Shown here: positions 1 through 26,684 of the stretch, one piece after another
How the letters are laid out: each line of letters opens with the position of its first letter
Numbering within the stretch: position 1 is the first letter of the stretch
DNA from: Caecitellus pseudoparvulus
Lineage: Eukaryota; Protista; Bigyra: Bicosoecida
Direction: 5' to 3'
DNA: 26,684 nt
Assembly: GCA_965644315.1 (NCBI GenBank)
Contig: CBFFRQ010000188.1
Span: 1-26,684 of the forward strand
Made by a program: the position numbers and the translations under genes
Notes under the pieces: model-generated
What the model was told of the DNA's origin: nothing
Database searches by the model: none
What the model saw: only the letters and a program-made list of their open reading frames with translations

Positions 1-3000
1 TAACCCTAACCCTAACACTAACCCTAACCCTAACCCTAACCCTAACCCTAACCCTAACCCTAACCCTAACCCTAACCCTAACCCTAACCCTAACCCTAAC
101 CCTAACCCTAACCCTAACCCTAACCCTAACCCTAACCCTAACCCTAACCCTAACCCTAACCCTAACCCTAACCCTAACCCTAACCCTAACCCTAACCCTA
201 ACCCTAACCCTAACCCTAACCCTAACCCTAACCCTAACCCTAACCCTAACCCTAACCCTAACCCTAACCCTAACCCTAACCCTAACCCTAACCCTAACCC
301 TAACCCTAACCCTAACCCTAACCCTAACCCTAACCCTAACCCTAACCCTAACCCTAACCCTAACCCTAACCCTAACCCTAACCCTAACCCTAACCCTAAC
401 CCTAACCCTAACCCTAACCCTAACCCTAACCCTAACCCTAACCCTAACCCTAACCCTAACCCTAACCCTAACCCTAACCCTAACCCTAACCCTAACCCTA
501 ACCCTAACCCTAACCCTAACCCTAACCCTAACCCTAACCCTAACCCTAACCCTAACCCTAACCCTAACCCTAACCCTAACCCTAACCCTAACCCTAACCC
601 TAACCCTAACCCTAACCCTAACCCTAACCCTAACCCTAACCCTAACCCTAACCCTAACCCTAACCCTAACCCTAACCCTAACCCTAACCCTAACCCTAAC
701 CCTAACCCTAACCCTAACCCTAACCCTAACCCTAACCCTAACCCTAACCCTAACCCTAACCCTAACCCTAACCCTAACCCTAACCCTAACCCTAACCCTA
801 ACCCTAACCCTAACCCTAACCCTAACCCTAACCCTAACCCTAACCCTAACCCTAACCCTAACCCTAACCCTAACCCTAACCCTAACCCTAACCCTAACCC
901 TAACCCTAACCCTAACCCTAACCCAAACCCTAACCCTAACCCTAACCCTAACCCTAACCCTAACCCTAACCCTAACCCTAACCCTAACCCTAACCCTAAC
1001 CCTAACCCTAACCCTAACCCTAACCCTAACCCTAACCCTAACCCTAACCCTAACCCTAACCCTAACCCTAACCCTAACCCTAACCCTAACCCTAACCCTA
1101 ACCCTAACCCTAACCCTAACCCTAACCCTAACCCTAACCCTAACCCTAACCCTAACCCTAACCCTAACCCTAACCCTAACCCTAACCCTAACCCTAACCC
1201 TAACCCTAACCCTAACCCTAACCCTAACCCTAACCCTAACCCTAACCCTAACCCTAACCCTAACCCTAACCCTAACCCTAACCCTAACCCTAACCCTAAC
1301 CCTAACCCTAACCCTAACCCTAACCCTAACCCTAACCCTAACCCTAACCCTAACCCTAACCCTAACCCTAACCCTAACCCTAACCCTAACCCTAACCCTA
1401 ACCCTAACCCTAACCCTAACCCTAACCCTAACCCTAACCCTAACCCTAACCCTAACCCTAACCCTAACCCTAACCCTAACCCTAACCCTAACCCTAACCC
1501 TAACCCTAACCCTAACCCTAACCCTAACCCTAACCCTAACCCTAACCCTAACCCTAACCCTAACCCTAACCCTAACCCTAACCCTAACCCTAACCCTAAC
1601 CCTAACCCTAACCCTAACCCTAACCCTAACCCTAACCCTAACCCTAACCCTAACCCTAACCCTAACCCTAACCCTAACCCTAACCCTAACCCTAACCCTA
1701 ACCCTAACCCTAACCCTAACCCTAACCCTAACCCTAACCCTAACCCTAACCCTAACCCTAACCCTAACCCTAACCCTAACCCTAACCCTAACCCTAACCC
1801 TAACCCTAACCCTAACCCTAACCCTAACCCTAACCCTAACCCTAACCCTAACCCTAACCCTAACCCTAACCCTAACCCTAACCCTAACCCTAACCCTAAC
1901 CCTAACCCTAACCCTAACCCTAACCCTAACCCTAACCCTAACCCTAACCCTAACCCTAACCCTAACCCTAACCCTAACCCTAACCCTAACCCTAACCCTA
2001 ACCCTAACCCTAACCCTAACCCTAACCCTAACCCTAACCCTAACCCTAACCCTAACCCTAACCCTAACCCTAACCCTAACCCTAACCCTAACCCTAACCC
2101 TAACCCTAACCCTAACCCTAACCCTAACCCTAACCCTAACCCTAACCCTAACCCTAACCCTAACCCTAACCCTAACCCTAACCCTAACCCTAACCCTAAC
2201 CCTAACCCTAACCCTAACCCTAACCCTAACCCTAACCCTAACCCTAACCCTAACCCTAACCCTAACCCTAACCCTAACCCTAACCCTAACCCTAACCCTA
2301 ACCCTAACCCTAACCCTAACCCTAACCCTAACCCTAACCCTAACCCTAACCCTAACCCTAACCCTAACCCTAACCCTAACCCTAACCCTAACCCTAACCC
2401 TAACCCTAACCCTAACCCTAACCCTAACCCTAACCCTAACCCTAACCCTAACCCTAACCCTAACCCTAACCCTAACCCTAACCCTAACCCTAACCCTAAC
2501 CCTAACCCTAACCCTAACCCTAACCCTAACCCTAACCCTAACCCTAACCCTAACCCTAACCCTAACCCTAACCCTAACCCTAACCCTAACCCTAACCCTA
2601 ACCCTAACCCTAACCCTAACCCTAACCCTAACCCTAACCCTAACCCTAACCCTAACCCTAACCCTAACCCTAACCCTAACCCTAACCCTAACCCTAACCC
2701 TAACCCTAACCCTAACCCTAACCCTAACCCTAACCCTAACCCTAACCCTAACCCTAACCCTAACCCTAACCCTAACCCTAACCCTAACCCTAACCCTAAC
2801 CCTAACCCTAACCCTAACCCTAACCCTAACCCTAACCCTAACCCTAACCCTAACCCTAACCCTAACCCTAACCCTAACCCTAACCCTAACCCTAACCCTA
2901 ACCCTAACCCTAACCCTAACCCTAACCCTAACCCTAACCCTAACCCTAACCCTAACCCTAACCCTAACCCTAACCCTAACCCTAACCCTAACCCTAACCC

Positions 3001-5627
3001 TAACCCTAACCCTAACCCTAACCCTAACCCTAACCCTAACCCTAACCCTAACCCTAACCCTAACCCTAACCCTAACCCTAACCCTAACCCTAACCCTAAC
3101 CCTAACCCTAACCCTAACCCTAACCCTAACCCTAACCCTAACCCTAACCCTAACCCTAACCCTAACCCTAACCCTAACCCTAACCCTAACCCTAACCCTA
3201 ACCCTAACCCTAACCCTAACCCTAACCCTAACCCTAACCCTAACCCTAACCCTAACCCTAACCCTAACCCTAACCCTAACCCTAACCCTAACCCTAACCC
3301 TAACCCTAACCCTAACCCTAACCCTAACCCTAACCCTAACCCTAACCCTAACCCTAACCCTAACCCTAACCCTAACCCTAACCCTAACCCTAACCCTAAC
3401 CCTAACCCTAACCCTAACCCTAACCCTAACCCTAACCCTAACCCTAACCCTAACCCTAACCCTAACCCTAACCCTAACCCTAACCCTAACCCTAACCCTA
3501 ACCCTAACCCTAACCCTAACCCTAACCCTAACCCTAACCCTAACCCTAACCCTAACCCTAACCCTAACCCTAACCCTAACCCTAACCCTAACCCTAACCC
3601 TAACCCTAACCCTAACCCTAACCCTAACCCTAACCCTAACCCTAACCCTAACCCTAACCCTAACCCTAACCCTAACCCTAACCCTAACCCTAACCCTAAC
3701 CCTAACCCTAACCCTAACCCTAACCCTAACCCTAACCCTAACCCTAACCCTAACCCTAACCCTAACCCTAACCCTAACCCTAACCCTAACCCTAACCCTA
3801 ACCCTAACCCTAACCCTAACCCTAACCCTAACCCTAACCCTAACCCTAACCCTAACCCTAACCCTAACCCTAACCCTAACCCTAACCCTAACCCTAACCC
3901 TAACCCTAACCCTAACCCTAACCCTAACCCTAACCCTAACCCTAACCCTAACCCTAACCCTAACCCTAACCCTAACCCTAACCCTAACCCTAACCCTAAC
4001 CCTAACCCTAACCCTAACCCTAACCCTAACCCTAACCCTAACCCTAACCCTAACCCTAACCCTAACCCTAACCCTAACCCTAACCCTAACCCTAACCCTA
4101 ACCCTAACCCTAACCCTAACCCTAACCCTAACCCTAACCCTAACCCTAACCCTAACCCTAACCCTAACCCTAACCCTAACCCTAACCCTAACCCTAACCC
4201 TAACCCTAACCCTAACCCTAACCCTAACCCTAACCCTAACCCTAACCCTAACCCTAACCCTAACCCTAACCCTAACCCTAACCCTAACCCTAACCCTAAC
4301 CCTAACCCTAACCCTAACCCTAACCCTAACCCTAACCCTAACCCTAACCCTAACCCTAACCCTAACCCTAACCCTAACCCTAACCCTAACCCTAACCCTA
4401 ACCCTAACCCTAACCCTAACCCTAACCCTAACCCTAACCCTAACCCTAACCCTAACCCTAACCCTAACCCTAACCCTAACCCTAACCCTAACCCTAACCC
4501 TAACCCTAACCCTAACCCTAACCCTAACCCTAACCCTAACCCTAACCCTAACCCTAACCCTAACCCTAACCCTAACCCTAACCCTAACCCTAACCCTAAC
4601 CCTAACCCTAACCCTAACCCTAACCCTAACCCTAACCCTAACCCTAACCCTAACCCTAACCCTAACCCTAACCCTAACCCTAACCCTAACCCTAACCCTA
4701 ACCCTAACCCTAACCCTAACCCTAACCCTAACCCTAACCCTAACCCTAACCCTAACCCTAACCCTAACCCTAACCCTAACCCTAACCCTAACCCTAACCC
4801 TAACCCTAACCCTAACCCTAACCCTAACCCTAACCCTAACCCTAACCCTAACCCTAACCCTAACCCTAACCCTAACCCTAACCCTAACCCTAACCCTAAC
4901 CCTAACCCTAACCCTAACCCTAACCCTAACCCTAACCCTAACCCTAACCCTAACCCTAACCCTAACCCTAACCCTAACCCTAACCCTAACCCTAACCCTA
5001 ACCCTAACCCTAACCCTAACCCTAACCCTAACCCTAACCCTAACCCTAACCCTAACCCTAACCCTAACCCTAACCCTAACCCTAACCCTAACCCTAACCC
5101 TAACCCTAACCCTAACCCTAACCCTAACCCTAACCCTAACCCTAACCCTAACCCTAACCCTAACCCTAACCCTAACCCTAACCCTAACCCTAACCCTAAC
5201 CCTAACCCTAACCCTAACCCTAACCCTAACCCTAACCCTAACCCTAACCCTAACCCTAACCCTAACCCTAACCCTAACCCTAACCCTAACCCTAACCCTA
5301 ACCCTAACCCTAACCCTAACCCTAACCCTAACCCTAACCCTAACCCTAACCCTAACCCTAACCCTAACCCTAACCCTAACCCTAACCCTAACCCTAACCC
5401 TAACCCTAACCCTAACCCTAACCCTAACCCTAACCCTAACCCTAACCCTAACCCTAACCCTAACCCTAACCCTAACCCTAACCCTAACCCTAACCCTAAC
5501 CCTAACCCTAACCCTAACCCTAACCCTAACCCTAACCCTAACCCTAACCCTAACCCTAACCCTAACCCTAACCCTAACCCTAACCCTAACCCTAACCCTA
5601 ACCCTAACCCTAACCCTAACCCTAACC
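1..5627 (+). repeat. Telomeric repeat tract (TAACCC)n / (TTAGGG)n, about 938 units, left chromosome end
   Basis: Continuous TAACCC hexamers from base 1. Only two variant units are visible (TAACAC, A at 17; AAACCC, A at 925). The tract ends as a partial unit TAACC at 5623-5627. C-rich strand at the 5' end is the expected orientation for a chromosome terminus. Confidence 0.99.
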
Positions 5628-8600
5628 TCGACGTCGAAAGACGCCACTCCAGCTCCATCTCCACTCACCACAAGCACGCAGTCAAAACCTTGCACAGCCT
5701 CAAAGTCGCCTTCATCAAGCTGCACAACTACCGTCAGTGTGCCCACCAATGTGGTCGCATCCCTACTGAACTCTTGCTCTGACATGCTGATTGAGATTCC
5801 TGACGCAGTGCCGGAAACACTGACAGAGGTTGCACTCAACACATCTGCAGCATCAACATCAGTCACATACAGCGTAAAATTACCCGGCAAGGATTCATCA
5901 GTAGCCTCTGCCACCGAGGCGATGGTGGACACAATCTGCGAAACCTCGTTCACGTCAAACACCTTCACGCTGAACACATGCTCCACATCCCCCACCGCCT
6001 CGCTCGACACCGGCCACACGTCACGACCGCGCACCGTCATCGTGATCACGCCGCCAGCCGGCAGCATCACGTCCTCCGCATCCAGCGACTTGGACCCCAC
6101 AGACCGATACACGATGTGTGCGTAGTTCGCACCGTCACCGCTTGCTGTCGACGCCTCCAGCGTGAACAGCTCCCCGAAGTACGCTGGCGACACACTCAAA
6201 CTCAACGACTGCAAGGCGTCGCCCACGTCACCGTCCTCGTCGAAGAACGCCACGACAGCGCTCTCGCTCCCGATGCCTGTCGCGCTGCCGTCTGCGATGT
6301 GCGACACGATTGTGCCATCAGCCGCGTTCTCCTCGATGCCAGCGTGGCTCCCCGTGCCCACCAGCGCAGGCGGGTCGTTCCTGTCCACCACCTGCACAGT
6401 CACACTGCCCGTGTCGGTGGTCGTGCCGTCCGACACCGTCACTGGCACAGACCAGCTGGCCGCGGGATCAGACGCCTCAAAGTCCAAGGCGCTCGCCATG
6501 ATGCTGCTCCCAGATGCGATGCGCAGCACAGCGCCAGAGAAGTCCCAGTCGCTGTCTGTCGAGCTAAACACCAAGCTGCTCGCCGCAGTGTCCACGTCAG
6601 CGGCAGGCACACTGCCCACAGCCAACGGGAACGACACGTCTGGGCTCCGGGACCAGCTCCCACGGCTGCCGCTCACAGCACCCGACACAGCCTCAGGCAC
6701 ATCCAACACCACACCCACGCCCAGCGTCGGCGCCTCGTCCACTCCAATGATGTCCACCGTCACAGTCACGACACGCGTGCTGGCCAGCACACCCGCCGGC
6801 TTCACCTCCTTCACCCGCACCGCAAACGTGTAGCTGTTGGGCTGGCTGTCCTCCGCGTCAAACATCACCAGTGTCTTCACCACCACGTCACTCCCTGACA
6901 CATCCACCACGAACCGTGACACGTCGGACCCCAGCACCTCCACGCTCTCCACTGCGTCACCGTCATCGTCGCTAAAGTACAAGTGACCCACCTCGGTACC
7001 AGCAGGCTCCTCCTCCAGCACTGCCAAGCTCACACTGGACGTCACACTGCCACCCGCACCAGTCAACAGGAACGGCGCCTTCTGGATGTCCGTCACATCC
7101 ACCACAAACCCCACCGTCACCGTCTCCTCCGTGCCCGTGTCGCCAGACACGCCCGTCGTGATCACCAAGTCAAACGTGTGCGCCGCTGCCTCCTCGTAGT
7201 TCAACAACGGAGCCGTGCCCTCGTTCGTGCTCACAGTGATCACGCAGCTGCTGCTGCCGGGTGTCACCTCCAAGTCAAAGAAGCTGTTTGCACCACCCGT
7301 GCCGGGCACAGGCGCCTCCCCCACCAACTTGGCAGACAGAATCGTGTGTGCCGCACTGCCAAAATCGACACTGTCGCCATCCACCACGTCGCTCTCGCCC
7401 ACACAGAACACCACCTGTGACACTGCCTCCTCACGCACGTTCGCCACAGCCCCACCGCTCTGCAGGAACTCAGCCGTCACAGACGGCGCCTCGCTCCGGT
7501 CTGTCACCGACACGCTGCATGCCGCTGTCGACACGCTCACGTCCACACCCGCCTCCCCAGTGCCCACAAACGACACAGCACAGTCCAGCGTGTACGGGTC
7601 ACTCCCAGCATTCGACAGGTCCACGCCTGCACTCCACACCTGCCACGCAGATGCATCGCTGTCCCACGCCACACTCAGGTACTCGCTGGCCACACTGGCA
7701 GACACGCCAGCAGCCGGCGACACGCCACTCTCGGGATCCGTCAACGTCACCGTGCCCACCATCTGGGGCACGAACGCCCCCGACGCGTCACGGGCATCCT
7801 CCGCCAGCTCCGTGACGCGCCCGGCGTCGTACGCAGCAGCAGTGGCCACCTCGTTCACTGGCGTCATCGTCACTTCCAACAAGAATGGCGTGTCCATAGG
7901 CGTACCCCAGTCGTCTGTGATCACCAAGGCCGCAGTGAACGTGGCACCCTCCTCAAAATCACCTGCATCCAGCGTCACAGTCACTGTCAGAGTGCCGGGT
8001 GTACCAGCGACAGCTGCAGTGTACGAAGATGCCACGTGGCTCAAGGTCACGCGCAAAGTATCAGGCGCGTTCACGTCCAGGCTCTTCACGCTCAGCGTGT
8101 GGCCGACGTCCACATCCCGCACGGTCACGGCAAATGACGCAGGCGCCGCTCCAACCGCTGACTCTGCAATCGTTGCACTGAGCCCCGATGCTGTCGGCTC
8201 CTCGTTCACGTCAAACACCTTCACGCTGAACACATGCTCCACATCCCCCACCGCCTCGCTCGACACCGGCCACACGTCACGACCGCGCACCGTCATCGTG
8301 ATCACGCCGCCAGCCGGCAGCATCACGTCCTCCGCATCCAGCGACTTGGACCCCACAGACCGATACACGATGTGTGCGTAGTTCGCACCGTCACCGCTTG
8401 CTGTCGACGCCTCCAGCGTGAACAGCTCCCCGAAGTACGCTGGCGACACACTCAAACTCAACGACTGCAAGGCGTCGCCCACGTCACCGTCCTCGTCGAA
8501 GAACGCCACGACAGCGCTCTCGCTCCCGATGCCTGTCGCGCTGCCGTCTGCGATGTGCGACACGATTGTGCCATCAGCCGCGTTCTCCTCGATGCCAGCG

Positions 8601-11600
8601 TGGCTCCCCGTGCCCACCAGCGCAGGCGGGTCGTTCCTGTCCACCACCTGCACAGTCACACTGCCCGTGTCGGTGGTCGTGCCGTCCGACACCGTCACTG
8701 GCACAGACCAGCTGGCCGCGGGATCAGACGCCTCAAAGTCCAAGGCGCTCGCCATGATGCTGCTCCCAGATGCGATGCGCAGCACAGCGCCAGAGAAGTC
8801 CCAGTCGCTGTCTGTCGAGCTAAACACTAGAGTACCAACGCCAGCGTCTGCATCCTCAACTGGAACTGGCGCAATCGAGAGCGGGAACGACACGTCTGGG
8901 CTCCGGGACCAGCTCCCACGGCTGCCGCTCACAGCACCCGACACAGCCTCAGGCACATCCAACACCACACCCACGCCCAGCGTCGGCGCCTCGTCCACTC
9001 CAATGATGTCCACCGTCACAGTCACGACACGCGTGCTGGCCAGCACACCCGCCGGCTTCACCTCCTTCACCCGCACCGCAAACGTGTAGCTGTTGGGCTG
9101 GCTGTCCTCCGCGTCAAACATCACCAGTGTCTTCACCACCACGTCACTCCCTGACACATCCACCACGAACCGTGACACGTCGGACCCCAGCACCTCCACG
9201 CTCTCCACTGCGTCACCGTCATCGTCGCTAAAGTACAAGTGACCCACCTCGGTACCAGCAGGCTCCTCCTCCAGCACTGCCAAGCTCACACTGGACGTCA
9301 CACTGCCACCCGCACCAGTCAACAGGAACGGCGCCTTCTGGATGTCCGTCACATCCACCACAAACCCCACCGTCACCGTCTCCTCCGTGCCCGTGTCGCC
9401 AGACACGCCCGTCGTGATCACCAAGTCAAACGTGTGCGCCGCTGCCTCCTCGTAGTTCAACAACGGAGCCGTGCCCTCGTTCGTGCTCACAGTGATCACG
9501 CAGCTGCTGCTGCCGGGTGTCACCTCCAAGTCAAAGAAGCTGTTTGCACCACCCGTGCCGGGCACAGGCGCCTCCCCCACCAACTTGGCAGACAGAATCG
9601 TGTGTGCCGCACTGCCAAAATCGACACTGTCGCCATCCACCACGTCGCTCTCGCCCACACAGAACACCACCTGTGACACTGCCTCCTCGCGCACGTTCGC
9701 CACAGCCCCACCGCTCTGCAGGAACTCAGCCGTCACAGACGGCGCCTCGCTCCGGTCTGTCACCGACACGCTGCATGCCGCTGTCGACACGCTCACGTCC
9801 ACACCCGCCTCCCCAGTGCCCACAAACGACACAGCACAGTCCAGCGTGTACGGGTCACTCCCAGCATTCGACAGGTCCACGCCTGCACTCCACACCTGCC
9901 ACGCAGATGCATCGCTGTCCCACGCCACACTCAGGTACTCGCTGGCCACACTGGCAGACACGCCAGCAGCCGGCGACACGCCACTCTCGGGATCCGTCAA
10001 CGTCACCGTGCCCACCATCTGGGGCACGAACGCCCCCGACGCGTCACGGGCATCCTCCGCCAGCTCCGTGACGCGCCCGGCGTCGTACGCAGCAGCAGTG
10101 GCCACCTCGTTCACTGGCGTCATCGTCACTTCCAACAAGAATGGCGTGTCCATAGGCGTACCCCAGTCGTCTGTGATCACCAAGGCCGCAGTGAACGTGG
10201 CACCCTCCTCAAAATCACCTGCATCCAGCGTCACAGTCACTGTCAGAGTGCCGGGTGTACCAGCGACAGCTGCAGTGTACGAAGATGCCACGTGGCTCAA
10301 GGTCACGCGCAAAGTATCAGGCGCGTTCACGTCCAGGCTCTTCACGCTCAGCGTGTGGCCGACGTCCACATCCCGCACGGTCACGGCAAATGACGCAGGC
10401 GCCGCTCCAACCGCTGACTCTGCAATCGTTGCACTGAGCCCCGATGCTGTCGGCTCCTCGTTCACGTCAAACACCTTCACGCTGAACACATGCTCCACAT
10501 CCCCCACCGCCTCGCTCGACACCGGCCACACGTCACGACCGCGCACCGTCATCGTGATCACGCCGCCAGCCGGCAGCATCACGTCCTCCGCATCCAGCGA
10601 CTTGGACCCCACAGACCGATACACGATGTGTGCGTAGTTCGCACCGTCACCGCTTGCTGTCGACGCCTCCAGCGTGAACAGCTCCCCGAAGTACGCTGGC
10701 GACACACTCAAACTCAACGACTGCAAGGCGTCGCCCACGTCACCGTCCTCGTCGAAGAACGCCACGACAGCGCTCTCGCTCCCGATGCCTGTCGCGCTGC
10801 CGTCTGCGATGTGCGACACGATTGTGCCATCAGCCGCGTTCTCCTCGATGCCAGCGTGGCTCCCCGTGCCCACCAGCGCAGGCGGGTCGTTCCTGTCCAC
10901 CACCTGCACAGTCACACTGCCCGTGTCGGTGGTCGTGCCGTCCGACACCGTCACTGGCACAGACCAGCTGGCCGCGGGATCAGACGCCTCAAAGTCCAAG
11001 GCGCTCGCCATGATGCTGCTCCCAGATGCGATGCGCAACACAGCGCCAGAGAAGTCCCAGTCGCTGTCTGTCGAGCTAAACACCAAGCTGCTCGCCGCAG
11101 TGTCCACGTCAGCGGCAGGCACACTGCCCACAGCCAACGGGAACGACACGTCTGGGCTCCGGGACCAGCTCCCACGGCTGCCGCTCACAGCACCCGACAC
11201 AGCCTCAGGCACATCCAACACCACACCCACGCCCAGCGTCGGCGCCTCGTCCACTCCAATGATGTCCACCGTCACAGTCACGACACGCGTGCTGGCCAGC
11301 ACACCCGCCGGCTTCACCTCCTTCACCCGCACCGCAAACGTGTAGCTGTTGGGCTGGCTGTCCTCCGCGTCAAACATCACCAGTGTCTTCACCACCACGT
11401 CACTCCCTGACACATCCACCACGAACCGTGACACGTCGGACCCCAGCACCTCCACGCTCTCCACTGCGTCATCGTCATCGTCGCTAAAGTACAAGTGACC
11501 CACCTCGGTACCAGCAGGCTCCTCCTCCAGCACTGCCAAGCTCACACTGGACGTCACACTGCCACCCGCACCAGTCAACAGGAACGGCGCCTTCTGGATG

Positions 11601-14600
11601 TCCGTCACATCCACCACAAACCCCACCGTCACCGTCTCCTCCGTGCCCGTGTCGCCAGACACGCCCGTCGTGATCACCAAGTCAAACGTGTGCGCCGCTG
11701 CCTCCTCGTAGTTCAACAACGGAGCCGTGCCCTCGTTCGTGCTCACAGTGATCACGCAGCTGCTGCTGCCGGGTGTCACCTCCAAGTCAAAGAAGCTGTT
11801 TGCACCACCCGTGCCGGGCACAGGCGCCTCCCCCACCAACTTGGCAGACAGAATCGTGTGTGCCGCACTGCCAAAATCGACACTGTCGCCATCCACCACG
11901 TCGCTCTCGCCCACACAGAACACCACCTGTGACACTGCCTCCTCGCGCACGTTCGCCACAGCCCCACCACTCTGCAGGAACTCAGCCGTCACAGACGGCG
12001 CCTCGCTCCGGTCTGTCACCGACACGCTGCATGCCGCTGTCGACACGCTCACGTCCACACCCGCCTCCCCAGTGCCCACAAACGACACAGCACAGTCCAG
12101 CGTGTACGGGTCACTCCCAGCATTCGACAGGTCCACGCCTGCACTCCACACCTGCCACGCAGATGCATCGCTGTCCCACGCCACACTCAGGTACTCGCTG
12201 GCCACACTGGCAGACACGCCAGCAGCCGGCGACACGCCACTCTCGGGATCCGTCAACGTCACCGTGCCCACCATCTGGGGCACGAACGCCCCCGACGCGT
12301 CACGGGCATCCTCCGCCAGCTCCGTGACGCGCCCGGCGTCGTACGCAGCAGCAGTGGCCACCTCGTTCACAGCCGTGACGAGCACAGTGAGCTGCAATGT
12401 GTCGGGTGAGTTTTCGAAATCACTGCTGGCTGCATCAGCAACCTTGACTGTGAAAGAGTTGGAAGAAGCCAGCTGAGAGCTGCCGTCAAGCTGGAGCCCT
12501 GGAGCACTCGCAGCGACTGGGCACACAGCCAGCTGCAGTCCATGCGCATCAGTGTACACGACCTTGAACTCCAAACCGTGCTTGTTTGCAGTGGCAGCAG
12601 TAGCAGTGGCCCCATCCAGCTCCACACTGTAGGCGCTCGCGTCGAACGATGACTCGTCGGTGTCCAAGTCAAAGTCTGTCAGTGCGACGGTCTCACAAGT
12701 ACTGGCAAGGTCTGTTTCAGTGAAGGAAAGCGTGTGCTGCAAGACTTGTGCCTTGGGGTGGTACCCAGCGTCTCGAACTTCTACGTCAACCGTACCAGTC
12801 TGGCTGGCGGCGCCGTCAGTGGTTACGGTGACGCTGAGACTGTGGGTGCCAGCGGACAAGGTCGCCCCCTCCAGTACAACAAGCTGGAAGGCACCGGGTG
12901 CTTCCCCGTCAGCGACGCCAAACACAGTGGACGTCGAGCCACCCTCTTGGACGTCGAAGTCTGAAGCAAGCAGATCTGAGTCTACATCTGACGCTTGCAG
13001 GAGGACGCCGATGGTGTGGGAGGCGTCATCCAGAAGCAAAGTCGCCTTGTTGGTCTCGTCAAGTAGGAGCTCAGGTGGGTCGTCAATGTCTGCGATGGTA
13101 ACAGGCACTGTCAATGTGGAGGACCGTGTTGGGGATGCAGAATCCACCAGATCCACCGTAATCGTGAAGGAAGACGTTGTTTCGTGGTCCAGCTCAACTT
13201 CTGGAGCAGATGCCGAAGTGCTCACTGTGATGACGATGCCGTCCAAGTCGGCGTCATTGATGGACGTGGACAATGTGAACATGGTGCTCCCTGCGTCCAG
13301 GCTGGTGCTGCTTATCGTCGCTGAGGTAAGCCCGCGCCCGAGCGAGCCTGGCTTGGAAATCGAAAACGAGCCCAGGCTGGTTCCAGCAGTTGGCGGCGTT
13401 GCGCCCCGCACGAGCTCGTCAATACTCAGAGCTGAGCTGAGAAGGGTATGGTCTTGATCGTTTTCATCAGTGACAGTCACAGTGATGGGAATGATACTCT
13501 CTGCAGGCGGCCCTTGAGACCTGTAGTCAAAGACTCGAAGCTGGACAGTCATGGCATTGGTCGCTCCTGGATTCGCACTTGGGTCTTCAAAGTCGAAGGC
13601 TTCCTTCGTCGCCAGCTCCCACCCGGCAGGAGCATGGGTAACTGAAAAGAAGGCAGCGGCATCCCCTGACACCTCAACGGTTCCGATCGTGTCCCCGACG
13701 TCCTCGTCTGCAAACTCCAGCGAGCCGATCACGGTGCCAGCCGGGGTGTTCTCGGCCACAGTAAAACTGTCAGTGAAGTCAGACTTTGTTGTGACAGAAG
13801 AGTACAGGTCCTTCAGCTGAGGAGCGTCATTGCGGTCGACGATGTAGAGGAACGACGAGAAGGCACGTGCCTTTACGTTAGAGCTCAAGTTTTCATCATC
13901 ACACGTTGCTGGGGTTGCGCGATCCGGGCCACCACAGTCATAGACAACGATGCACAGGGGGGTCTGGCGATACCGCTTGTCGTGTTCGGAGAACTGTGTT
14001 GAGTACACCAGCTGCGAGTCCTCCACGAAAGAGGCAAGGTCGGCGGCACCGTGCAGTGCTTCGCTCTCGTGCTGAGTTCCGGATGTCTGCGATGAATCAT
14101 CCTGAAGGCTGTCCAAGACTGCGGACGGGATGGCGTCACACGCGTTGGACTCCCTCCTGTTCGGGGCACCAATGACACGATCTGTCCCAGGAACAAAGGA
14201 AGATGCTGTAGATTGAAGGCCTCGGGGAACGCCCTGCTTGTGCTGCCCAGGCTCAAACGTGTGCATGTGAACAACAACATCGTCAGGTGTGTTTGAGCCA
14301 AATGAGCCCTCTGCATCCTCAAGATTAAAGGTGGCATCTGCTGTTGAACGAATGGCCCATGCACCGCTTGGAAGCTTGAAGGGTTCGACTTGCGCGCCCA
14401 GAGAGAACACCTTGACCGAAGTGATGGGATCCTCGCGAAGCCTCCTGTCTTCGTCAGCTGTGTCAAGCTGGCCAATAAGTGTTCCGCCTGGAGAATTTTC
14501 AGGAATGACAAAGCCCATGTTCCGCAGAAGCCCAGTTCCAGTTGGGGGATCGTTCTTGTCGACCAGAACCATCGTCAACGTCTCACTCAGGACTTGCGAA

Positions 14601-15349
14601 GCGGAACCAAAAGGATCCGTCTCGACATCAAAGCCAAACGTCGCCCGAGTGTCAAACATAGTTTTGGGGACATCTGGAAAGGCGTGGACGAAGCCTTCAA
14701 AGTCAAACGGGCTGCATCGGATGCCAAATTCAACTTCAGTGCCTGATGTGCTGTACTCGTGGGTTGCAGGCGCAAAGCTCTGCTGCAGATGACTCGCATA
14801 CGCACTCTGAACTGAGCCCGAGAAGGACATGAACTGATCTGGATCAGACGGATCAGTGATGAAATCCTCGTCAACCACTGTAAAGACCAAGGAGCCACCT
14901 GTTCCGTCAGCATTGGCAGTCGCAATCTGACTGCCGCTCTCACGCTCAGAGCAATACACAGTGCTCGCACCATCGAACACAGCAGTTGCAAGCTCATCCA
15001 TATCGGACACCGTGAGCGAAAGTGTTGTTGACGAAGCAGTGTTGCCCCCTGACTCAAACTGCGCAAGGAACTCAATGTCAAATGTGCCTGGGAAAGGAGG
15101 TGTTGGAACTCCACCGGCATCTTCCATTAAAATGGCCTCAAAATCAGCGCCAGGAGCATCCACGCTAAACGTAGCAGTACCGGAGAACGAGTGTGTCAAA
15201 GCGACAGGGGCCGCAACGGACCATGAGCCAACATCGAATGCTGCGGGGAGAGGATCGCTTCCTGCATCCAAACTTGTAACAGAGCCATCAGAGATGATAT
15301 CATCACCCTCCACATCGATGGAAGTAACCAGCACCGAGATTAACGTCGT
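5627..15349 (-). CDS. Distal 3,241-codon cadherin-repeat segment with no stop codon (absent from the ORF track)
   Basis: Manual translation in the frame of the 15350 TGA gives TTLISVLVTSIDVEGDD...VDKNDPP...IPENSPGGTLIGQLDTADED...IVDRNDAP...VAENTPAGTVIGSLEFADED...AFDFED...LDFE...VVDRNDPP...FDVNE...QLDEGDFE...ASFDVE. The frame is the same at both ends. The track lists no stop-terminated ORF in this frame, which is consistent with it staying open to the window edge. Confidence 0.9.
5944..12370 (-). repeat. Coding tandem repeat, 2256-bp period (752 aa, six cadherin domains), about 2.85 copies arranged A-B-A-B-A
   Basis: Offset of 2256 (5944 matches 8200 and 10456; ORF echoes at 6162/8418/10674). 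Block A is about 1.9 kb with five domains (linkers TDRSE, TDIQK, GVDE, DRND, DVNE). Block B is about 342 bp with one domain. Copies differ by a few SNPs and one 54-bp patch. Confidence 0.95.
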
Positions 15350-18300
15350 TCAAGCGCTGTTCTCTTCGACGGAATCTGAAGATGTTGAAACGCTTACACT
15401 CATCATGGAACCGTCGTACTCCTTGACATTCACCAGCTTCGGCAAGAAGCTCGTCGTCGACGTCACGTACGTCTCCCCGTCCTCACTCAGCAGCACCACC
15501 TTCAGCGCCGTGCCAAGCGTGCCCGCAGCGTTGTAGTCGCTGTAGTCCACACCCTGCTCCGTCAGCACGTCCTCCAGGTTGAAGTCTGCCACACGCACTG
15601 TCGCCACCACGTCGTCCTCATCCCGAGTCCAATCGCCGGGCGCCAGCTCAAACGTCAAGTGCTCCAGCACCACCACCTCCACAGGTCCTCCCCCGCCGTG
15701 CGGGGTCAGCTGCTGGCTGTGGTCGTCAGTGCCAGGCGTGGCCAGCGGCGTCGCGTCCGCCACCGACACCACCTGCAGGAACGCCACATACTCATGCTCC
15801 ACCTCGTCCACGGCCACCGTCACATCCACCAGGTTCGACGCCGACCCGGCATTCTCAGACACCGACCGCAAGTTCCCGTATGTGATGGATGCAGCCAGTG
15901 GCAGCTCCTGCACGTTCACCAGCTTCGGCACGAAGCTCGTCGTCGACGTCACGTGCGACCCCCCGTCCTCACTCAGCAGCACCAACTTCAACGCCGTGCC
16001 AGGCGTGCCCGCAGCGTTGTAGTCGCTGTAGTCCACACCCTGCTCCGTCAGCACGTCCTCCAGGTTGAAGTCTGCCACACGCACTGTCGCCACCACGTCG
16101 TCCTCATCCCGAGTCCAATCGCCGGGCGCCAGCTCAAACGTCAAGTGCTCCAGCACCACCACCTCCACAGGTCCTCCCCCGCCGTGCGGGGTCAGCTGCT
16201 GGCTGTGGTCGTCAGTGCCAGGCGTGGCCAGCGGCGTCGCGTCCGCCACCGACACCACCTGCAGGAACGCCACATACTCATGCTCCACCTCGTCCACGGC
16301 CACCGTCACATCCACCAGGTTCGACGCCGACCCGGCATTCTCAGACACCGACCGCAAGTTCCCGTATGTGATGGATGCAGCCAGTGGCAGCTCCTGCACG
16401 TTCACCAGCTTCGGCACGAAGCTCGTCGTCGACGTCACGTGCGACCCCCGTCCTCACTCAGCAGCACCAACTTCAACGCCGTGCCAGGCGTGCCGGCAGC
16501 GTCATAGTCACTGTAGTCCACACCCTGCTCCGTCAGCACGTCCTCCAGGTTGAAGTCTGCCACACGCACTGTCGCCACCACGTCGTCCTCATCCCGAGTC
16601 CAATCGCCGGGCGCCAGCTCAAACGTCAAGTGCTCCAGCACCACCACCTCCACAGGTCCTCCCCCGCCGTGCGGGGTCAGCTGCTGGCTGTGGTCGTCAG
16701 TGCCAGGCGTGGCCAGCGGCGTCGCGTCCGCCACCGACACCACCTGCAGGAACGCCACATACTCATGCTCCACCTCGTCCACGGCCACCGTCACATCCAC
16801 CAGGTTCGACGCCGACCCGGCATTCTCAGACACCGACCGCAAGTTCCCGTATGTGATGGATGCAGCCAGTGGCAGCTCCTGCACGTTCACCAGCTTCGGC
16901 ACGAAGCTCGTCGTCGACGTCACGTGCGACCCCCCGTCCTCACTCAGCAGCACCAACTTCAACGCCGTGCCAGGCGTGCCGGCAGCGTCATAGTCGCTGT
17001 AGTCCACACCCTGCTCCGTCAGCACGTCCTCCAGGTTGAAGTCTGCCACACGCACTGTCGCCACCACGTCGTCCTCATCCCGAGTCCAATCGCCGGGCGC
17101 CAGCTCAAACGTCAAGTGCTCCAGCACCACCACCTCCACAGGTCCTCCCCCGCCGTGCGGGGTCAGCTGCTGGCTGTGGTCGTCAGTGCCAGGCGTGGCC
17201 AGCGGCGTCGCGTCCGCCACCGACACCACCTGCAGGAACGCCACATACTCATGCTCCACCTCGTCCACGGCCACCGTCACATCCACCAGGTTCGACGCCG
17301 ACCCGGCATTCTCAGACACCGACCGCAAGTTCCCGTATGTGATGGATGCAGCCAGTGGCAGCTCCTGCACGTTCACCAGCTTCGGCACGAAGCTCGTCGT
17401 CGACGTCACGTGCGACCCCCGTCCTCACTCAGCAGCACCAACTTCAACGCCGTGCCAGGCGTGCCGGCAGCGTCATAGTCACTGTAGTCCACACCCTGCT
17501 CCGTCAGCACGTCCTCCAGGTTGAAGTCTGCCACACGCACTGTCGCCACCACGTCGTCCTCATCCCGAGTCCAATCGCCGGGCGCCAGCTCAAACGTCAA
17601 GTGCTCCAGCACCACCACCTCCACAGGTCCTCCCCCGCCGTGCGGGGTCAGCTGCTGGCTGTGGTCGTCAGTGCCAGGCGTGGCCAGCGGCGTCGCGTCC
17701 GCCACCGACACCACCTGCAGGAACGCCACATACTCATGCTCCACCTCGTCCACGGCCACCGTCACATCCACCAGGTTCGACGCCGACCCGGCATTCTCAG
17801 ACACCGACCGCAAGTTCCCGTATGTGATGGATGCAGCCAGTGGCAGCTCCTGCACGTTCACCAGCTTCGGCACGAAGCTCGTCGTCGACGTCACGTGCGA
17901 CCCCCCGTCCTCACTCAGCAGCACCAACTTCAACGCCGTGCCAGGCGTGCCCGCAGCGTTGTAGTCGCTGTAGTCCACACCCTGCTCCGTCAGCACGTCC
18001 TCCAGGTTGAAGTCTGCCACACGCACTGTCGCCACCACGTCGTCCTCATCCCGAGTCCAATCGCCGGGCGCCAGCTCAAACGTCAAGTGCTCCAGCACCA
18101 CCACCTCCACAGGTCCTCCCCCGCCGTGCGGGGTCAGCTGCTGGCTGTGGTCGTCAGTGCCAGGCGTGGCCAGCGGCGTCGCGTCCGCCACCGACACCAC
18201 CTGCAGGAACGCCACATACTCATGCTCCACCTCGTCCACGGCCACCGTCACATCCACCAGGTTCGACGCCGACCCGGCATTCTCAGACACCGACCGCAAG

Positions 18301-20819
18301 TTCCCGTATGTGATGGATGCAGCCAGTGGCAGCTCCTGCACGTTCACCAGCTTCGGCACGAAGCTCGTCGTCGACGTCACGTGCGACCCCCCGTCCTCAC
18401 TCAGCAGCACCAACTTCAACGCCGTGCCAGGCGTGCCGGCAGCGTCATAGTCACTGTAGTCCACACCCTGCTCCGTCAGCACGTCCTCCAGGTTGAAGTC
18501 TGCCACACGCACTGTCGCCACCACGTCGTCCTCATCCCGAGTCCAATCGCCGGGCGCCAGCTCAAACGTCAAGTGCTCCAGCACCACCACCTCCACAGGT
18601 CCTCCCCCGCCGTGCGGGGTCAGCTGCTGGCTGTGGTCGTCAGTGCCAGGCGTGGCCAGCGGCGTCGCGTCCGCCACCGACACCACCTGCAGGAACGCCA
18701 CATACTCATGCTCCACCTCGTCCACGGCCACCGTCACATCCACCAGGTTCGACGCCGACCCGGCATTCTCAGACACCGACCGCAAGTTCCCGTATGTGAT
18801 GGATGCAGCCAGTGGCAGCTCCTGCACGTTCACCAGCTTCGGCACGAAGCTCGTCGTCGACGTCACGTGCGACCCCCGTCCTCACTCAGCAGCACCAACT
18901 TCAACGCCGTGCCAGGCGTGCCGGCAGCGTCATAGTCACTGTAGTCCACACCCTGCTCCGTCAGCACGTCCTCCAGGTTGAAGTCTGCCACACGCACTGT
19001 CGCCACCACGTCGTCCTCATCCCGAGTCCAATCGCCGGGCGCCAGCTCAAACGTCAAGTGCTCCAGCACCACCACCTCCACAGGTCCTCCCCCGCCGTGC
19101 GGGGTCAGCTGCTGGCTGTGGTCGTCAGTGCCAGGCGTGGCCAGCGGCGTCGCGTCCGCCACCGACACCACCTGCAGGAACGCCACATACTCATGCTCCA
19201 CCTCGTCCACGGCCACCGTCACATCCACCAGGTTCGACGCCGACCCGGCATTCTCAGACACCGACCGCAAGTTCCCGTATGTGATGGATGCAGCCAGTGG
19301 CAGCTCCTGCACGTTCACCAGCTTCGGCACGAAGCTCGTCGTCGACGTCACGTGCGACCCCCCGTCCTCACTCAGCAGCACCAACTTCAACGCCGTGCCA
19401 GGCGTGCCGGCAGCGTCATAGTCGCTGTAGTCCACACCCTGCTCCGTCAGCACGTCCTCCAGGTTGAAGTCTGCCACACGCACTGTCGCCACCACGTCGT
19501 CCTCATCCCGAGTCCAATCGCCGGGCGCCAGCTCAAACGTCAAGTGCTCCAGCACCACCACCTCCACAGGTCCTCCCCCGCCGTGCGGGGTCAGCTGCTG
19601 GCTGTGGTCGTCAGTGCCAGGCGTGGCCAGCGGCGTCGCGTCCGCCACCGACACCACCTGCAGGAACGCCACATACTCATGCTCCACCTCGTCCACGGCC
19701 ACCGTCACATCCACCAGGTTCGACGCCGACCCGGCATTCTCAGACACCGACCGCAAGTTCCCGTATGTGATGGATGCAGCCAGTGGCAGCTCCTGCACGT
19801 TCACCAGCTTCGGCACGAAGCTCGTCGTCGACGTCACGTGCGACCCCCCGTCCTCACTCAGCAGCACCAACTTCAACGCCGTGCCAGGCGTGCCGGCAGC
19901 GTCATAGTCGCTGTAGTCCACACCCTGCTCCGTCAGCACGTCCTCCAGGTTGAAGTCTGCCACACGCACTGTCGCCACCACGTCGTCCTCATCCCGAGTC
20001 CAATCGCCGGGCGCCAGCTCAAACGTCAAGTGCTCCAGCACCACCACCTCCACAGGTCCTCCCCCGCCGTGCGGGGTCAGCTGCTGGCTGTGGTCGTCAG
20101 TGCCAGGCGTGGCCAGCGGCGTCGCGTCCGCCACCGACACCACCTGCAGGAACGCCACATACTCATGCTCCACCTCGTCCACGGCCACCGTCACATCCAC
20201 CAGGTTCGACGCCGACCCGGCATTCTCAGACACCGACCGCAAGTTCCCGTATGTGATGGATGCAGCCAGTGGCAGCTCCTGCACGTTCACCAGCTTCGGC
20301 ACGAAGCTCGTCGTCGACGTCACGTGCGACCCCCGTCCTCACTCAGCAGCACCAACTTCAACGCCGTGCCAGGCGTGCCGGCAGCGTCATAGTCACTGTA
20401 GTCCACACCCTGCTCCGTCAGCACGTCCTCCAGGTTGAAGTCTGCCACACGCACTGTCGCCACCACGTCGTCCTCATCCCGAGTCCAATCGCCGGGCGCC
20501 AGCTCAAACGTCAAGTGCTCCAGCACCACCACCTCCACAGGTCCTCCCCCGCCGTGCGGGGTCAGCTGCTGGCTGTGGTCGTCAGTGCCAGGCGTGGCCA
20601 GCGGCGTCGCGTCCGCCACCGACACCACCTGCAGGAACGCCACATACTCATGCTCCACCTCGTCCACGGCCACCGTCACATCCACCAGGTTCGACGCCGA
20701 CCCGGCATTCTCAGACACCGACCGCAAGTTCCCGTATGTGATGGATGCAGCCAGTGGCAGCTCCTGCACGTTCACCAGCTTCGGCACGAAGCTCGTCGTC
20801 GACGTCACGTGCGACCCCC
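15350..20819 (-). CDS. Frameshifted continuation of the same gene (five ORF segments made of 162-aa repeats)
   Basis: Each segment resumes the identical peptide (VTSTTSFVPKLVNVQELPL...) in a new frame after a C5 (G5 on minus) variant at 20815-20819, 20330-20334, 18873-18877, 17416-17420 and 16445-16449. The last segment ends at TGA 15350-15352. Confidence 0.8.
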
Positions 20820-23204
20820 GTCCTCACTCAGCAGCACCAACTTCAACGCCGTGCCAGGCGTGCCGGCAGCGTCATAGTCACTGTAGTCCACACCCTGCTC
20901 CGTCAGCACGTCCTCCAGGTTGAAGTCTGCCACACGCACTGTCGCCACCACGTCGTCCTCATCCCGAGTCCAATCGCCGGGCGCCAGCTCAAACGTCAAG
21001 TGCTCCAGCACCACCACCTCCACAGGTCCTCCCCCGCCGTGCGGGGTCAGCTGCTGGCTGTGGTCGTCAGTGCCAGGCGTGGCCAGCGGCGTCGCGTCCG
21101 CCACCGACACCACCTGCAGGAACGCCACATACTCATGCTCCACCTCGTCCACGGCCACCGTCACATCCACCAGGTTCGACGCCGACCCGGCATTCTCAGA
21201 CACCGACCGCAAGTTCCCGTATGTGATGGATGCAGCCAGTGGCAGCTCCTGCACGTTCACCAGCTTCGGCACGAAGCTCGTCGTCGACGTCACGTGCGAC
21301 CCCCCGTCCTCACTCAGCAGCACCAACTTCAACGCCGTGCCAGGCGTGCCCGCAGCGTTGTAGTCGCTGTAGTCCACACCCTGCTCCGTCAGCACGTCCT
21401 CCAGGTTGAAGTCTGCCACACGCACTGTCGCCACCACGTCGTCCTCATCCCGAGTCCAATCGCCGGGCGCCAGCTCAAACGTCAAGTGCTCCAGCACCAC
21501 CACCTCCACAGGTCCTCCCCCGCCGTGCGGGGTCAGCTGCTGGCTGTGGTCGTCAGTGCCAGGCGTGGCCAGCGGCGTCGCGTCCGCCACCGACACCACC
21601 TGCAGGAACGCCACATACTCATGCTCCACCTCGTCCACGGCCACCGTCACATCCACCAGGTTCGACGCCGACCCGGCATTCTCAGACACCGACCGCAAGT
21701 TCCCGTATGTGATGGATGCAGCCAGTGGCAGCTCCTGCACGTTCACCAGCTTCGGCACGAAGCTCGTCGTCGACGTCACGTGCGACCCCCCGTCCTCACT
21801 CAGCAGCACCAACTTCAACGCCGTGCCAGGCGTGCCGGCAGCGTCATAGTCGCTGTAGTCCACACCCTGCTCCGTCAGCACGTCCTCCAGGTTGAAGTCT
21901 GCCACACGCACTGTCGCCACCACGTCGTCCTCATCCCGAGTCCAATCGCCGGGCGCCAGCTCAAACGTCAAGTGCTCCAGCACCACCACCTCCACAGGTC
22001 CTCCCCCGCCGTGCGGGGTCAGCTGCTGGCTGTGGTCGTCAGTGCCAGGCGTGGCCAGCGGCGTCGCGTCCGCCACCGACACCACCTGCAGGAACGCCAC
22101 ATACTCATGCTCCACCTCGTCCACGGCCACCGTCACATCCACCAGGTTCGACGCCGACCCGGCATTCTCAGACACCGACCGCAAGTTCCCGTATGTGATG
22201 GATGCAGCCAGTGGCAGCTCCTGCACGTTCACCAGCTTCGGCACGAAGCTCGTCGTCGACGTCACGTGCGACCCCCCGTCCTCACTCAGCAGCACCAACT
22301 TCAACGCCGTGCCAGGCGTGCCGGCAGCGTCATAGTCACTGTAGTCCACACCCTGCTCCGTCAGCACGTCCTCCAGGTTGAAGTCTGCCACACGCACTGT
22401 CGCCACCACGTCGTCCTCATCCCGAGTCCAATCGCCGGGCGCCAGCTCAAACGTCAAGTGCTCCAGCACCACCACCTCCACAGGTCCTCCCCCGCCGTGC
22501 GGGGTCAGCTGCTGGCTGTGGTCGTCAGTGCCAGGCGTGGCCAGCGGCGTCGCGTCCGCCACCGACACCACCTGCAGGAACGCCACATACTCATGCTCCA
22601 CCTCGTCCACGGCCACCGTCACATCCACCAGGTTCGACGCCGACCCGGCATTCTCAGACACCGACCGCAAGTTCCCGTATGTGATGGATGCAGCCAGTGG
22701 CAGCTCCTGCACGTTCACCAGCTTCGGCACGAAGCTCGTCGTCGACGTCACGTGCGACCCCCCGTCCTCACTCAGCAGCACCAACTTCAACGCCGTGCCA
22801 GGCGTGCCGGCAGCGTCATAGTCACTGTAGTCCACACCCTGCTCCGTCAGCACGTCCTCCAGGTTGAAGTCTGCCACACGCACTGTCGCCACCACGTCGT
22901 CCTCATCCCGAGTCCAATCGCCGGGCGCCAGCTCAAACGTCAAGTGCTCCAGCACCACCACCTCCACAGGTCCTCCCCCGCCGTGCGGGGTCAGCTGCTG
23001 GCTGTGGTCGTCAGTGCCAGGCGTGGCCAGCGGCGCCCCGTCTGCCACCGACACCACCTGCAGGAACCCCACATATGAATGTGCGAATTCCGGAGTGTTC
23101 TCGAGTGTGATGGTGACCAGGTCTGACGTCGACCCGGCATTCTCAGACACCGCCTGCAAGTTCCCGTACGTGATGGATGCAGTCAATGGCAGCTCCTGCA
23201 CGTT
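15429..23204 (-). repeat. Coding tandem repeat, 16 x 486 bp (485 bp in five copies), each a 162-aa enlarged cadherin-like domain
   Basis: Period of 486 is visible in the sequence and in the ORF track offsets (for example 21406/21892/22378/22864). Internal copies are identical except for a C5/C6 run and a few SNPs about 50-70 bp away. The two terminal copies are partly diverged. Motifs per unit: VSENAG, DFNLED, VNVQE. Confidence 0.95.
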
Positions 23205-25781: not shown

Positions 25782-25792
25782 GGGCGATGATA

Positions 25793-25821
25793 CTGCAAGG
25801 AGGGTTGAAGGAAGAAATGAA
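25793..25821 (-). promoter_or_regulatory. 3' splice acceptor (polypyrimidine tract + TGCAG) 11 nt upstream of the ATG
   Basis: Minus strand reads TTCATTTCTTCCTTCAACCCTCCTTGCAG|TATCATCGCCC-ATG. Confidence 0.6.
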
Positions 25822-26085
25822 CTTATGTTGTGGAAGTTGAAGGTGTGCAGGCACACAAGCGCAGGGAAGGCGAGGAGAGAAAAGCACGAGGAACAGCTGG
25901 GCACGGCTCCTGCAAAGCCCTCCGCATCAAACTAGCGGGAAGCGTCATCACCAGGCCTCCTTGATCAGTTTTGGGCACTTTGTGAGAGAGCCACAGTGCG
26001 TGAGGGAGGAGGAGCGCGCGCGCAGAAAGGAGCTTTCCGCATGCAAGGTGCAAGTTGCTTCACACCCTCCCTCCGCGCACGGGCG

Positions 26086-26142
26086 CTGCTAGGTCAGGGG
26101 GAAGTCAGACGCACACCATGTACACAGTAGAAAGGCACTCAC
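26086..26142 (-). other. Putative short (54-57 nt) 5'-UTR intron
   Basis: Minus strand: GTGAGT donor (26142-26137), then CTGACTTCCCCCTGAC (branch-point-like CTGAC twice), then CTAGCAG acceptor(s) ending at 26089 or 26086. Confidence 0.35.
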
Positions 26143-26684
26143 GGGAATAGCTTGTCGGTTCGACTTCACGCGTCGTAGCAGGCGGCACAAAGAGGGCAGC
26201 CTGTCTGGCGCGTGCCGAGGTACAAGGCAGGCGCGCACCACGAAATCGTGGCTGGCACCAGCACTCATGCAGTGAGGAGCCCAAACGTAGAAGTCTGGGT
26301 TGGGTGAAGTAATGTGTCCCGGGTCCAGAAGTGAGGGACCTGTGGGTGGCGCACACCAGCGGCCCCTTCAAACCCCCCCCCCTCCTTCCGCTGGCCGCAG
26401 CGACCCAAGCTCGGCGTCCCACTTTGGAGCACTTGTTCGTGCGCGCTGGGGCGATAAAGCCAGCCCTACTCGGCTGCGAAGCAAGGAAGAAAGCTCATTG
26501 GAGACTCTCAAGCATGTGCTGCTTGGATCGGGCCGCTGAAGAACATGCAGCGGCCCAGAAAGGCAAGCCCAGATGTGCAAGTTTTTCAGACGTGCCGCTG
26601 CCGGAGGAGCTTCCCACAAGTGATGGCCCGGAGTCTTAGCTGCCCAGAGCGCTTCGTCCTGTTTTCCTGGAGCGCTGCGCCGTT

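Follow-up and report, generated by a model that had tools for sequence, protein, structure and literature searches.

Contig CBFFRQ010000188.1 of Caecitellus pseudoparvulus (C188) joins a telomere to a giant cadherin-like gene whose minus-strand reading frame runs on into the telomeric repeats as poly(Val-Arg) (VR). The whole contig, 26,684 bases, is the window analysed here, and it belongs to an assembly of 215 contigs and 30.6 Mb. We consider that this end is most probably, at roughly 0.8, a chromosome break inside a subtelomeric cadherin-like gene that was re-capped by telomerase, an event known as telomere healing. The VR run-on would then be incidental, because the codon phase of the break happened to meet one of the two open telomeric frames, for which the chance is 2/3. 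A sequence-only reading of this DNA had entertained a protein whose C-terminus is written by telomerase. That idea is not supported, as C188 is a 3'-truncated copy and the intact gene ends in a membrane helix and a TAG stop; C188 is no evidence for a telomerase-written protein tail.

An intact copy locates the probable break

The telomere array occupies positions 1-5627 and is (CCCTAA)n on the plus strand, with a period of 6, 937.8 copies, 99% matches and 0 indels (Tandem Repeats Finder, annotated on the minus strand); bases 17 and 925 are its sole departures from a perfect repeat. Its TTAGGG G-strand points outward, running 5' to 3' on the minus strand to the contig end, and the array abuts coding sequence directly (as printed, ...ccctaacc|tcgacgtcgaaagacgc; on the minus strand, GCG TCT TTC GAC GTC GAG GTT AGG). 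A search of the same genome found a second, colinear copy of the gene: the reverse complement of C188 aligns with positions 6830-33510 of contig C147. The two are 97% identical across the distal cadherin repeats, 91% over the 5' unique part and 83-86% along the short-repeat array. On C147 the gene is a single uninterrupted frame (7484-37621, 10,046 codons, TAG stop). Counted from the first Met, its protein is exactly 10,000 residues long. As judged from hydropathy only, it begins with a hydrophobic leader, and its single strong hydrophobic helix lies ~33 residues from the C-terminus, leaving a short tail. With a predicted signal peptide, a large ectodomain and a single membrane helix, the C147 product is a putative type I membrane protein.

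At the break, C147 reads GCG TCT TTC GAC GTC GAA GTA ACA TTG ACT GAC GTA AAC GAG CGG CCG, or ASFDVE-VTLTDVNERP in protein, with AGTAACA where C188 has GG-TTAGGG. The homology ends at ...GTCGA (5628), within the junction region (5620-5640, minus strand) that the comparison with C147 defines. Because C147 runs on as VTLTDVNERP, the cut in C188 is placed inside a cadherin domain, within its predicted last beta-strand and just before the TDVNERP inter-domain linker. The cut corresponds to residue 8,676 of the C147 frame counted from stop to stop, or 8,630 from the Met. C188 has thus lost its final 1,370 residues and, with them, the membrane helix and stop codon as well as the 3' end; the part lost has another PF00028 domain (37.6-48.6 bits). 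It had also been suggested that the first VRV of the telomere extends the last beta-strand. This is a coincidence: C147 has Val (GTA) at that place and telomeric GTT is also Val, so that the strand only seems to continue.

We propose that a double-strand break inside the subtelomeric cadherin-like gene was followed by resection, after which telomerase, pairing hardly or not at all, would have begun GGTTAG at the 3' end ...GTCGA. The new array would then have been lengthened to full size and stably inherited. The G at 5627 may be genomic (GAA and GAG are synonymous, and there is a GGT microhomology) or the first base added by telomerase, and the genome-wide GG-TTAGGG register described below favours the latter. 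A 1,389-aa open frame on C77 encodes a telomerase (PF12009, 79 bits), and C188 is without the element that directly follows the telomere at ~32 other ends.

The damage seems to have struck a gene that had long been in use. Between the two copies, a unique region of 991 codons has 54 synonymous and 16 non-synonymous changes, giving a ratio of non-synonymous to synonymous substitution rates (dN/dS) of 0.094, with dS ~0.08. Such a ratio implies that purifying selection kept both copies functional during most of the time since they diverged, and hence that C188 was damaged recently. Beyond about -790 from the ATG, C188 and C147 diverge, and C147 there shares its sequence with C161 and C68; the two copies are either paralogs or sit on homologues that differ in structure. 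The locus is subtelomeric in both copies, because a member of a SPRY-domain family lies past the C147 stop (C147:38217-42399, a 1,719-codon frame, PF00622 at E 4.5e-20), and many of the ~20+ copies of this family, 89-94% alike, sit within a few kb of telomere tracts. Moreover, C188 probably forms the tip of the chromosome arm of C51, because its end (26577-26684, the last ~90-108 bases) overlaps the start of the 130-kb C51 (1-116) in the same orientation, with ~87 identical bases.

The open frame and the telomere

Read on the minus strand, the frame has no stop from 15349 to base 2, which gives 5,116 codons, 3,241 of them from the gene and 1,875 from the telomere. The last gene codon, Glu at 5627-5629, straddles the junction. 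In the gene frame the telomere then supplies 938 Val, 935 Arg, one Trp (923-925) and one Ser (17-19). Its remaining two frames are Leu-Gly (LG), which is stop-free, and a frame with 936 stops. The sequence-only reading had described the entry in VR with ~1,875 open codons, the Trp and Ser (rather than stops) at the two variant repeats, and the arithmetic of three telomeric frames (VR, LG or stop). On recounting, the length is exact, both variant codons are where it placed them and the frame arithmetic is correct. It had further cautioned that an open entry has a 2-in-3 chance by accident, and rightly so: with a prior of 2/3, the observation is no more than chance would give.

The structure of the gene piece is that of a cadherin-like ectodomain. 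The open remnant of 3,241 codons (5628-15349, minus strand) was delimited from its open reading frame (ORF) and from Pfam; PF00028 on the 3,240-aa piece reaches E 2e-21 and 76.6 bits, above the Pfam gathering score, which bears out the cadherin identity proposed earlier for this ORF. From the junction inward, the remnant comprises ~three tandem 2,256-bp (752-aa) repeats (5944-12376, minus strand) and a unique part (12377-15349, minus strand) in which PF00028 scores 48.5 bits, with the Pfam match at residues 528-627 of the piece (~13469-13768). In the 752-aa repeat adjoining the junction, PF00028 reaches 22 bits only, under the cut-off. Throughout the genome, PF00028 has 136 matches in ~25+ giant, apparently intronless open frames of 2,000-10,046 codons, a large family for a 30-Mb protist genome.

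Damage upstream of the junction

The open frame is closed on its upstream side by an in-frame TGA at 15350-15352 (minus strand), where the aligned in-frame codon of C147 is GGA (Gly). Next come 16 tandem 486-bp (162-aa) repeats (15429-23204, minus strand), 98-100% alike, and an N-terminal unique region (23205-25781, minus strand) that begins with an ATG at 25781 and a signal-peptide-like hydrophobic leader (MRAPSLAFLALASVVSSAWA...). C188 keeps this leader in a form identical to that of C147. The upstream region (25782-26684) is shared with the C147 upstream region down to 26571. The numbers of repeats differ between the copies, with 23 units of 489 bp (163 aa) and four of 2,256 bp in C147 vs 16 of 486 bp and ~three of 2,256 bp in C188. 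Concerted evolution is strong in the short-repeat arrays (15429-23204 of the window vs C147:10199-21460), their units being 98-100% alike inside each copy and ~83% alike between C188 and C147.

Five of the 486-bp repeats carry a further lesion, a run of five C in place of six (C5 for C6; 16441, 17412, 18869, 20326 and 20811), each a -1 frameshift. All five runs adjoin a single repeat variant, the GCAA type, being present in 5/8 such units vs 0/7 others (Fisher P 0.026). Because of this association with one variant, and because there are zero indels in the 5.6-kb telomere of the same contig, we lean towards real variants; this looks like spread within the array by unequal exchange. The TGA is a substitution and raises no homopolymer problem. 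We also considered whether TGA might be a sense codon in this organism, and this was ruled out, since TGA occurs once in >5,000 codons and the paralog has GGA at the aligned position.

There is thus no uninterrupted frame from the ATG at 25781 to the telomeric repeats, since the TGA and the five -1 frameshifts lie between them. The giant ORF described by the sequence-only reading holds for the frame that starts at 15349 and fails for the whole gene. Translation from the native ATG cannot reach the telomere, whether or not the frameshifts are real, and ribosomes starting there would halt ~5,000 codons short of it. The C188 copy is, we infer, a pseudogene remnant.

Other chromosome ends

The survey of chromosome ends consisted of pattern searches for the inner array edge and of 21 junctions that were read, and the tally rests on these and on short matched strings. 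At ~32 canonical junctions the telomere is followed by the same conserved element (CCCTAAC|TTTCCAAATG... or CCCTAAC|TTTCCAAATGTCAACC...), which was found on contigs C5, C8, C9, C11, C13, C19, C30, C44, C61, C67, C69, C79, C81, C89, C95, C111, C128, C133, C150, C151, C153, C154, C170, C173, C187, C194, C196, C207 and C211. At ~16 non-canonical junctions, the array abuts unique DNA instead, and 11 of these 16 start GG-TTAGGG: C111, C129, C176, C177 (12388), C188 itself, C206, C19, C5 (10998), C125, C79 and C105. With 1/6 expected, this register has a binomial P of 5e-6, computed post hoc. We suggest that it is a telomerase signature, namely a fixed start position on non-telomeric ends. Such a shared register is not expected from random chimeric joins.

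C188 is not the only end at which a gene has been cut. On C79 (350000-356500), a SPRY-family ORF of at least 1,732 codons is cut at 355200 by an 850-bp internal TTAGGG tract, through which it reads as Leu-Gly for ~285 codons. On C125, a contig of 5,777 bp, an ORF of 580 codons that weakly matches P-loop NTPases (AAA_16, NACHT) meets the telomere near 3130 in the LG frame. A 22-nt insert, AGCTACTCAATGCATTCTGG, lies ~40 bases into the C125 array. The entry frames of the ORF-telomere fusions are therefore one VR, two LG and no stop, and three open entries have a P of 0.30 by chance. It had been proposed to look at the other ends for cadherin genes fused to telomeres and for their frame of entry. 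The other two fusions are non-cadherin and LG, as a random choice of frame would have it, and no other telomere-fused cadherin gene was found in the genome searches, in which the C135 and C10 frames near telomeres were not read. On these two contigs, cadherin open frames face nearby telomere tracts (C135 at ~12.5-23 kb, 3,667 codons; C10 at ~2-12 kb, 2,230 codons), and they may be further cadherin genes beside, or cut by, telomeres.

Many contigs have a terminal array, an element of 7-13 kb and a second, inner array that abuts unique DNA (for example C5, C177, C187 and C79). By analogy, the C188 tract could be internal: an old healed break, followed by telomere-specific retroelements and a newer telomere beyond the contig start. 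This would be a variant of the healed break and not an alternative to truncation. We think it unlikely, because the inner tracts seen are short (~0.4 kb on C5, ~0.85 kb on C79), whereas the C188 tract has 5.6 kb, is near-perfect and resembles the longest terminal arrays (C8, C30 and C89; ~5.2-5.7 kb). A motif, ATGCATTGAGTAGCT or variants of it, is found either flanked by telomere tracts or where the canonical element has its outer tip, mostly 40-60 bases away from a junction (C125, C145, C177 at 12.3 kb, C187 at 1.9-2.8 kb, C163, C53 and C10). It is probably the terminus of a telomere-specific element, and to our knowledge it is unlike sequencing adapters.

Copy number and haplotypes in public sequencing data

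Public runs were examined as Logan contigs, not raw reads, with 5580-5639 masked as repeat. In run X1, which is probably the source sample, a contig on 5777-5953 carries the C188 letter at all 13 positions that separate C188 from C147, at a depth of 51.7, and pieces of a repeat present seven times have depths of 285-343, or ~47 per copy. Another X1 contig, of 1,899 nt, covers 5640-5806 and extends 1,732 nt past the junction; its depth of 45.6 corresponds to one copy, and it carries the C188 letter at 5734. The 1,732-nt extension cannot be telomere in a k=31 graph, and the far end of the contig, placed by length, is ~76 nt past the point where C147 becomes paralog-similar. The most likely interpretation is that this contig follows the C147 path after bubble popping. 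Taken together, these depths indicate, as far as coarse k-mer depths can, that both copies are at equal dose proximal to the break and that the DNA beyond the break is present once. In the assembly, the 1.6 kb immediately beyond the break (C147:33512-35153) occurs only once.

These data bear on whether the junction is an assembly artefact, that is, a chimeric long read or a mis-join, with the real C188-type copy continuing like C147. The 1,899-nt contig could be taken in that sense, since it has the C188 letter at 5734 and goes on past the junction; at the same time, its single-copy depth and its far end fit the C147 path, and the assembly holds no C188-type version of the distal 1.6 kb. C188 is also an orphan contig of 26.7 kb whose junction was not inspected in reads. 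On the other side stand the outward orientation of the telomere, the GG-TTAGGG start that it has in common with most non-canonical ends, and the other genes of the assembly that are cut likewise (C79 and C125). We therefore regard an artefact as quite improbable.

A healed break remains by far our favoured explanation, and several points weigh against it. No read or contig was seen across 5627, contigs being the only data and 5580-5639 being masked. The dosage argument is as coarse as the k-mer depths of Logan contigs from which it is drawn. The contig starts inside the array, so the 5.6-kb tract may be the real end of the chromosome or may have telomere-specific retroelements beyond it, as other ends do. 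C188 is small, and its far end was left unjoined to C51 by the assembler. Finally, the frameshifts sit in a C6 homopolymer and could be consensus errors, in which case only the TGA parts the ATG from the telomere.

The C188 haplotype is not private to one sample, because run X3, which has another organism label and comes from a separate 2018 study, has a contig identical to it over 5814-5973. Over the same interval, a marine metagenome (run X4) has a third haplotype that mixes C188 and C147 letters (5882, 5915 and 5919-5924), which indicates natural allelic diversity, or recombination between copies, in wild populations. An exact 29-mer beside the junction, free of telomere letters, had 0 matches in Joint Genome Institute (JGI) metagenome contigs, and the last 120 residues before the junction had no match in a homologous-protein search.

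Transcription and its possible products

In run X11, a metatranscriptomic RNA-Seq library, contigs on 6229-6488, 7458-8330, 9376-9621 and 11086-11382 match C188 exactly and match no C147 copy. This suggests that a C188-type allele is transcribed in nature, although the allele may be intact there and DNA carry-over is possible. The sequence-only reading presupposed transcription distal to about 15 kb, and these RNA-library contigs, on 6229-11382, do lie there.

It is tempting to speculate that the fusion is functional, with the promoter driving an RNA that joins the gene to telomeric G-strand RNA (TERRA) and that either gives, by read-through or from an intact allele, a secreted, poly(VR)-tailed cadherin or acts in cis as a regulator of the telomere. 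The open frame of 5,116 codons, the retained promoter and signal peptide, and the X11 contigs, exact to C188-type repeats over 6229-11382, could all be cited for this idea, and mammals are known to make VR peptides from telomeric RNA (PMC9992779). However, the upstream part holds the TGA and five frameshifts, C188 no longer has the membrane anchor, LG is the frame in which the other ORF-telomere fusions enter, and an open frame has a prior of 2/3 in any case. There is no RNA contig on 5580-6164, where the junction part is masked and where contigs cannot show absence, and X11 comes from a natural community, with the intact allele or DNA carry-over mentioned above as possible sources. Moreover, a non-stop poly-basic tract of 1,875 codons would stall ribosomes and be degraded. 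We give this possibility hardly any credence.

Another reading is that the C188 copy is still transcribed from its own promoter, through the 20-kb remnant and into the telomere. The product would be an allele-specific ORF-TERRA chimera, which could affect the length or chromatin of this particular telomere; the C188 array is among the longest in the assembly. We hold this too to be very improbable. If the frameshifts were consensus errors and the TGA leaky, such a chimera could feed the poly(VR) tract to the ribosome. Under the healed-break explanation, by contrast, transcription from the retained promoter, if any, would yield a gene-TERRA-like chimera with premature stops, a substrate of nonsense-mediated decay (NMD) or non-stop decay, and a transcript of the C188 remnant would be no source of a VR-tailed cadherin.

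Comparison with known systems

The kind of event proposed here, a healed chromosome break, is already known, and C188 would be a further example of it. What C188 offers is a well-documented case of telomere healing inside a gene, with an intact copy that allows a before-and-after comparison, in a free-living marine protist and not in a parasite, a ciliate or a tumour cell. Together with the other cut genes and the GG-TTAGGG register, it suggests that the chromosome ends of this organism are repeatedly broken and re-capped. These ends lend themselves to the study of two questions: at which sites telomerase begins on non-telomeric DNA, and how gene families in the subtelomeres turn over. We could speculate that frequent breaking and healing in the subtelomeres turns over the large family of giant adhesin genes.

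The gene itself recalls the giant cadherins of the FAT and protocadherin type in its tandem PF00028 domains and DVNE-type linker and, in the C147 copy, in its signal peptide, single-pass anchor and very large ectodomain. Unlike these giants, it is intronless and consists mostly of near-identical long tandem repeats of two kinds (163 aa and 752 aa) with a weak PF00028 score or none. Its cytoplasmic tail has only 33 residues, in which no catenin-binding region is recognised, although no test for one was made.

As for the telomeric part, VR and GL repeats are the only ones for which G-strand telomeric RNA can code (Al-Turki and Griffith 2023, PMC9992779), as the sequence-only reading had stated. 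The likeness to mammalian TERRA dipeptides lies in the same hexamer, with two open frames (VR and GL) and one closed. In mammals, the peptides come from repeat-associated non-AUG translation of TERRA starting in subtelomeres (PMC9992779), whereas here VR is only contiguous with a broken ORF at the DNA level. The VR coding capacity is a property of the hexamer and not evidence of function.

Messages that lack a stop codon are dealt with by ribosome-associated quality control. A transcript of the last 3,241 codons of C188 would resemble such non-stop messenger RNAs, having no in-frame stop and a long poly-basic tract. Unlike them, the C188 message read from the native start would be a premature-stop substrate of the NMD type.

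Telomere healing is known from yeast, ciliates and nematodes. The closest counterpart is that of Plasmodium falciparum, where 5 of the 28 chromosome ends of strain 3D7 are healed, and at 4 of the 28 the telomere repeats lie within a var gene that has been cut short (Calhoun et al. 2017, PMC5550746). In both organisms, the repeats directly adjoin coding sequence of a subtelomeric surface-protein gene, large and rich in repeats, which becomes a pseudogene; the normal telomere-associated elements are absent from the healed end; several such ends occur per genome; and telomerase is present. The two differ in that our case comes from a free-living, GC-rich marine protist with TTAGGG repeats and concerns a 10,000-aa cadherin-like gene instead of var. 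Canonical ends here carry their own conserved telomere-adjoining element in place of the telomere-associated repeat elements (TAREs), and, unlike in P. falciparum, an intact diverged copy of the broken gene (dS ~0.08) survives elsewhere in the genome.

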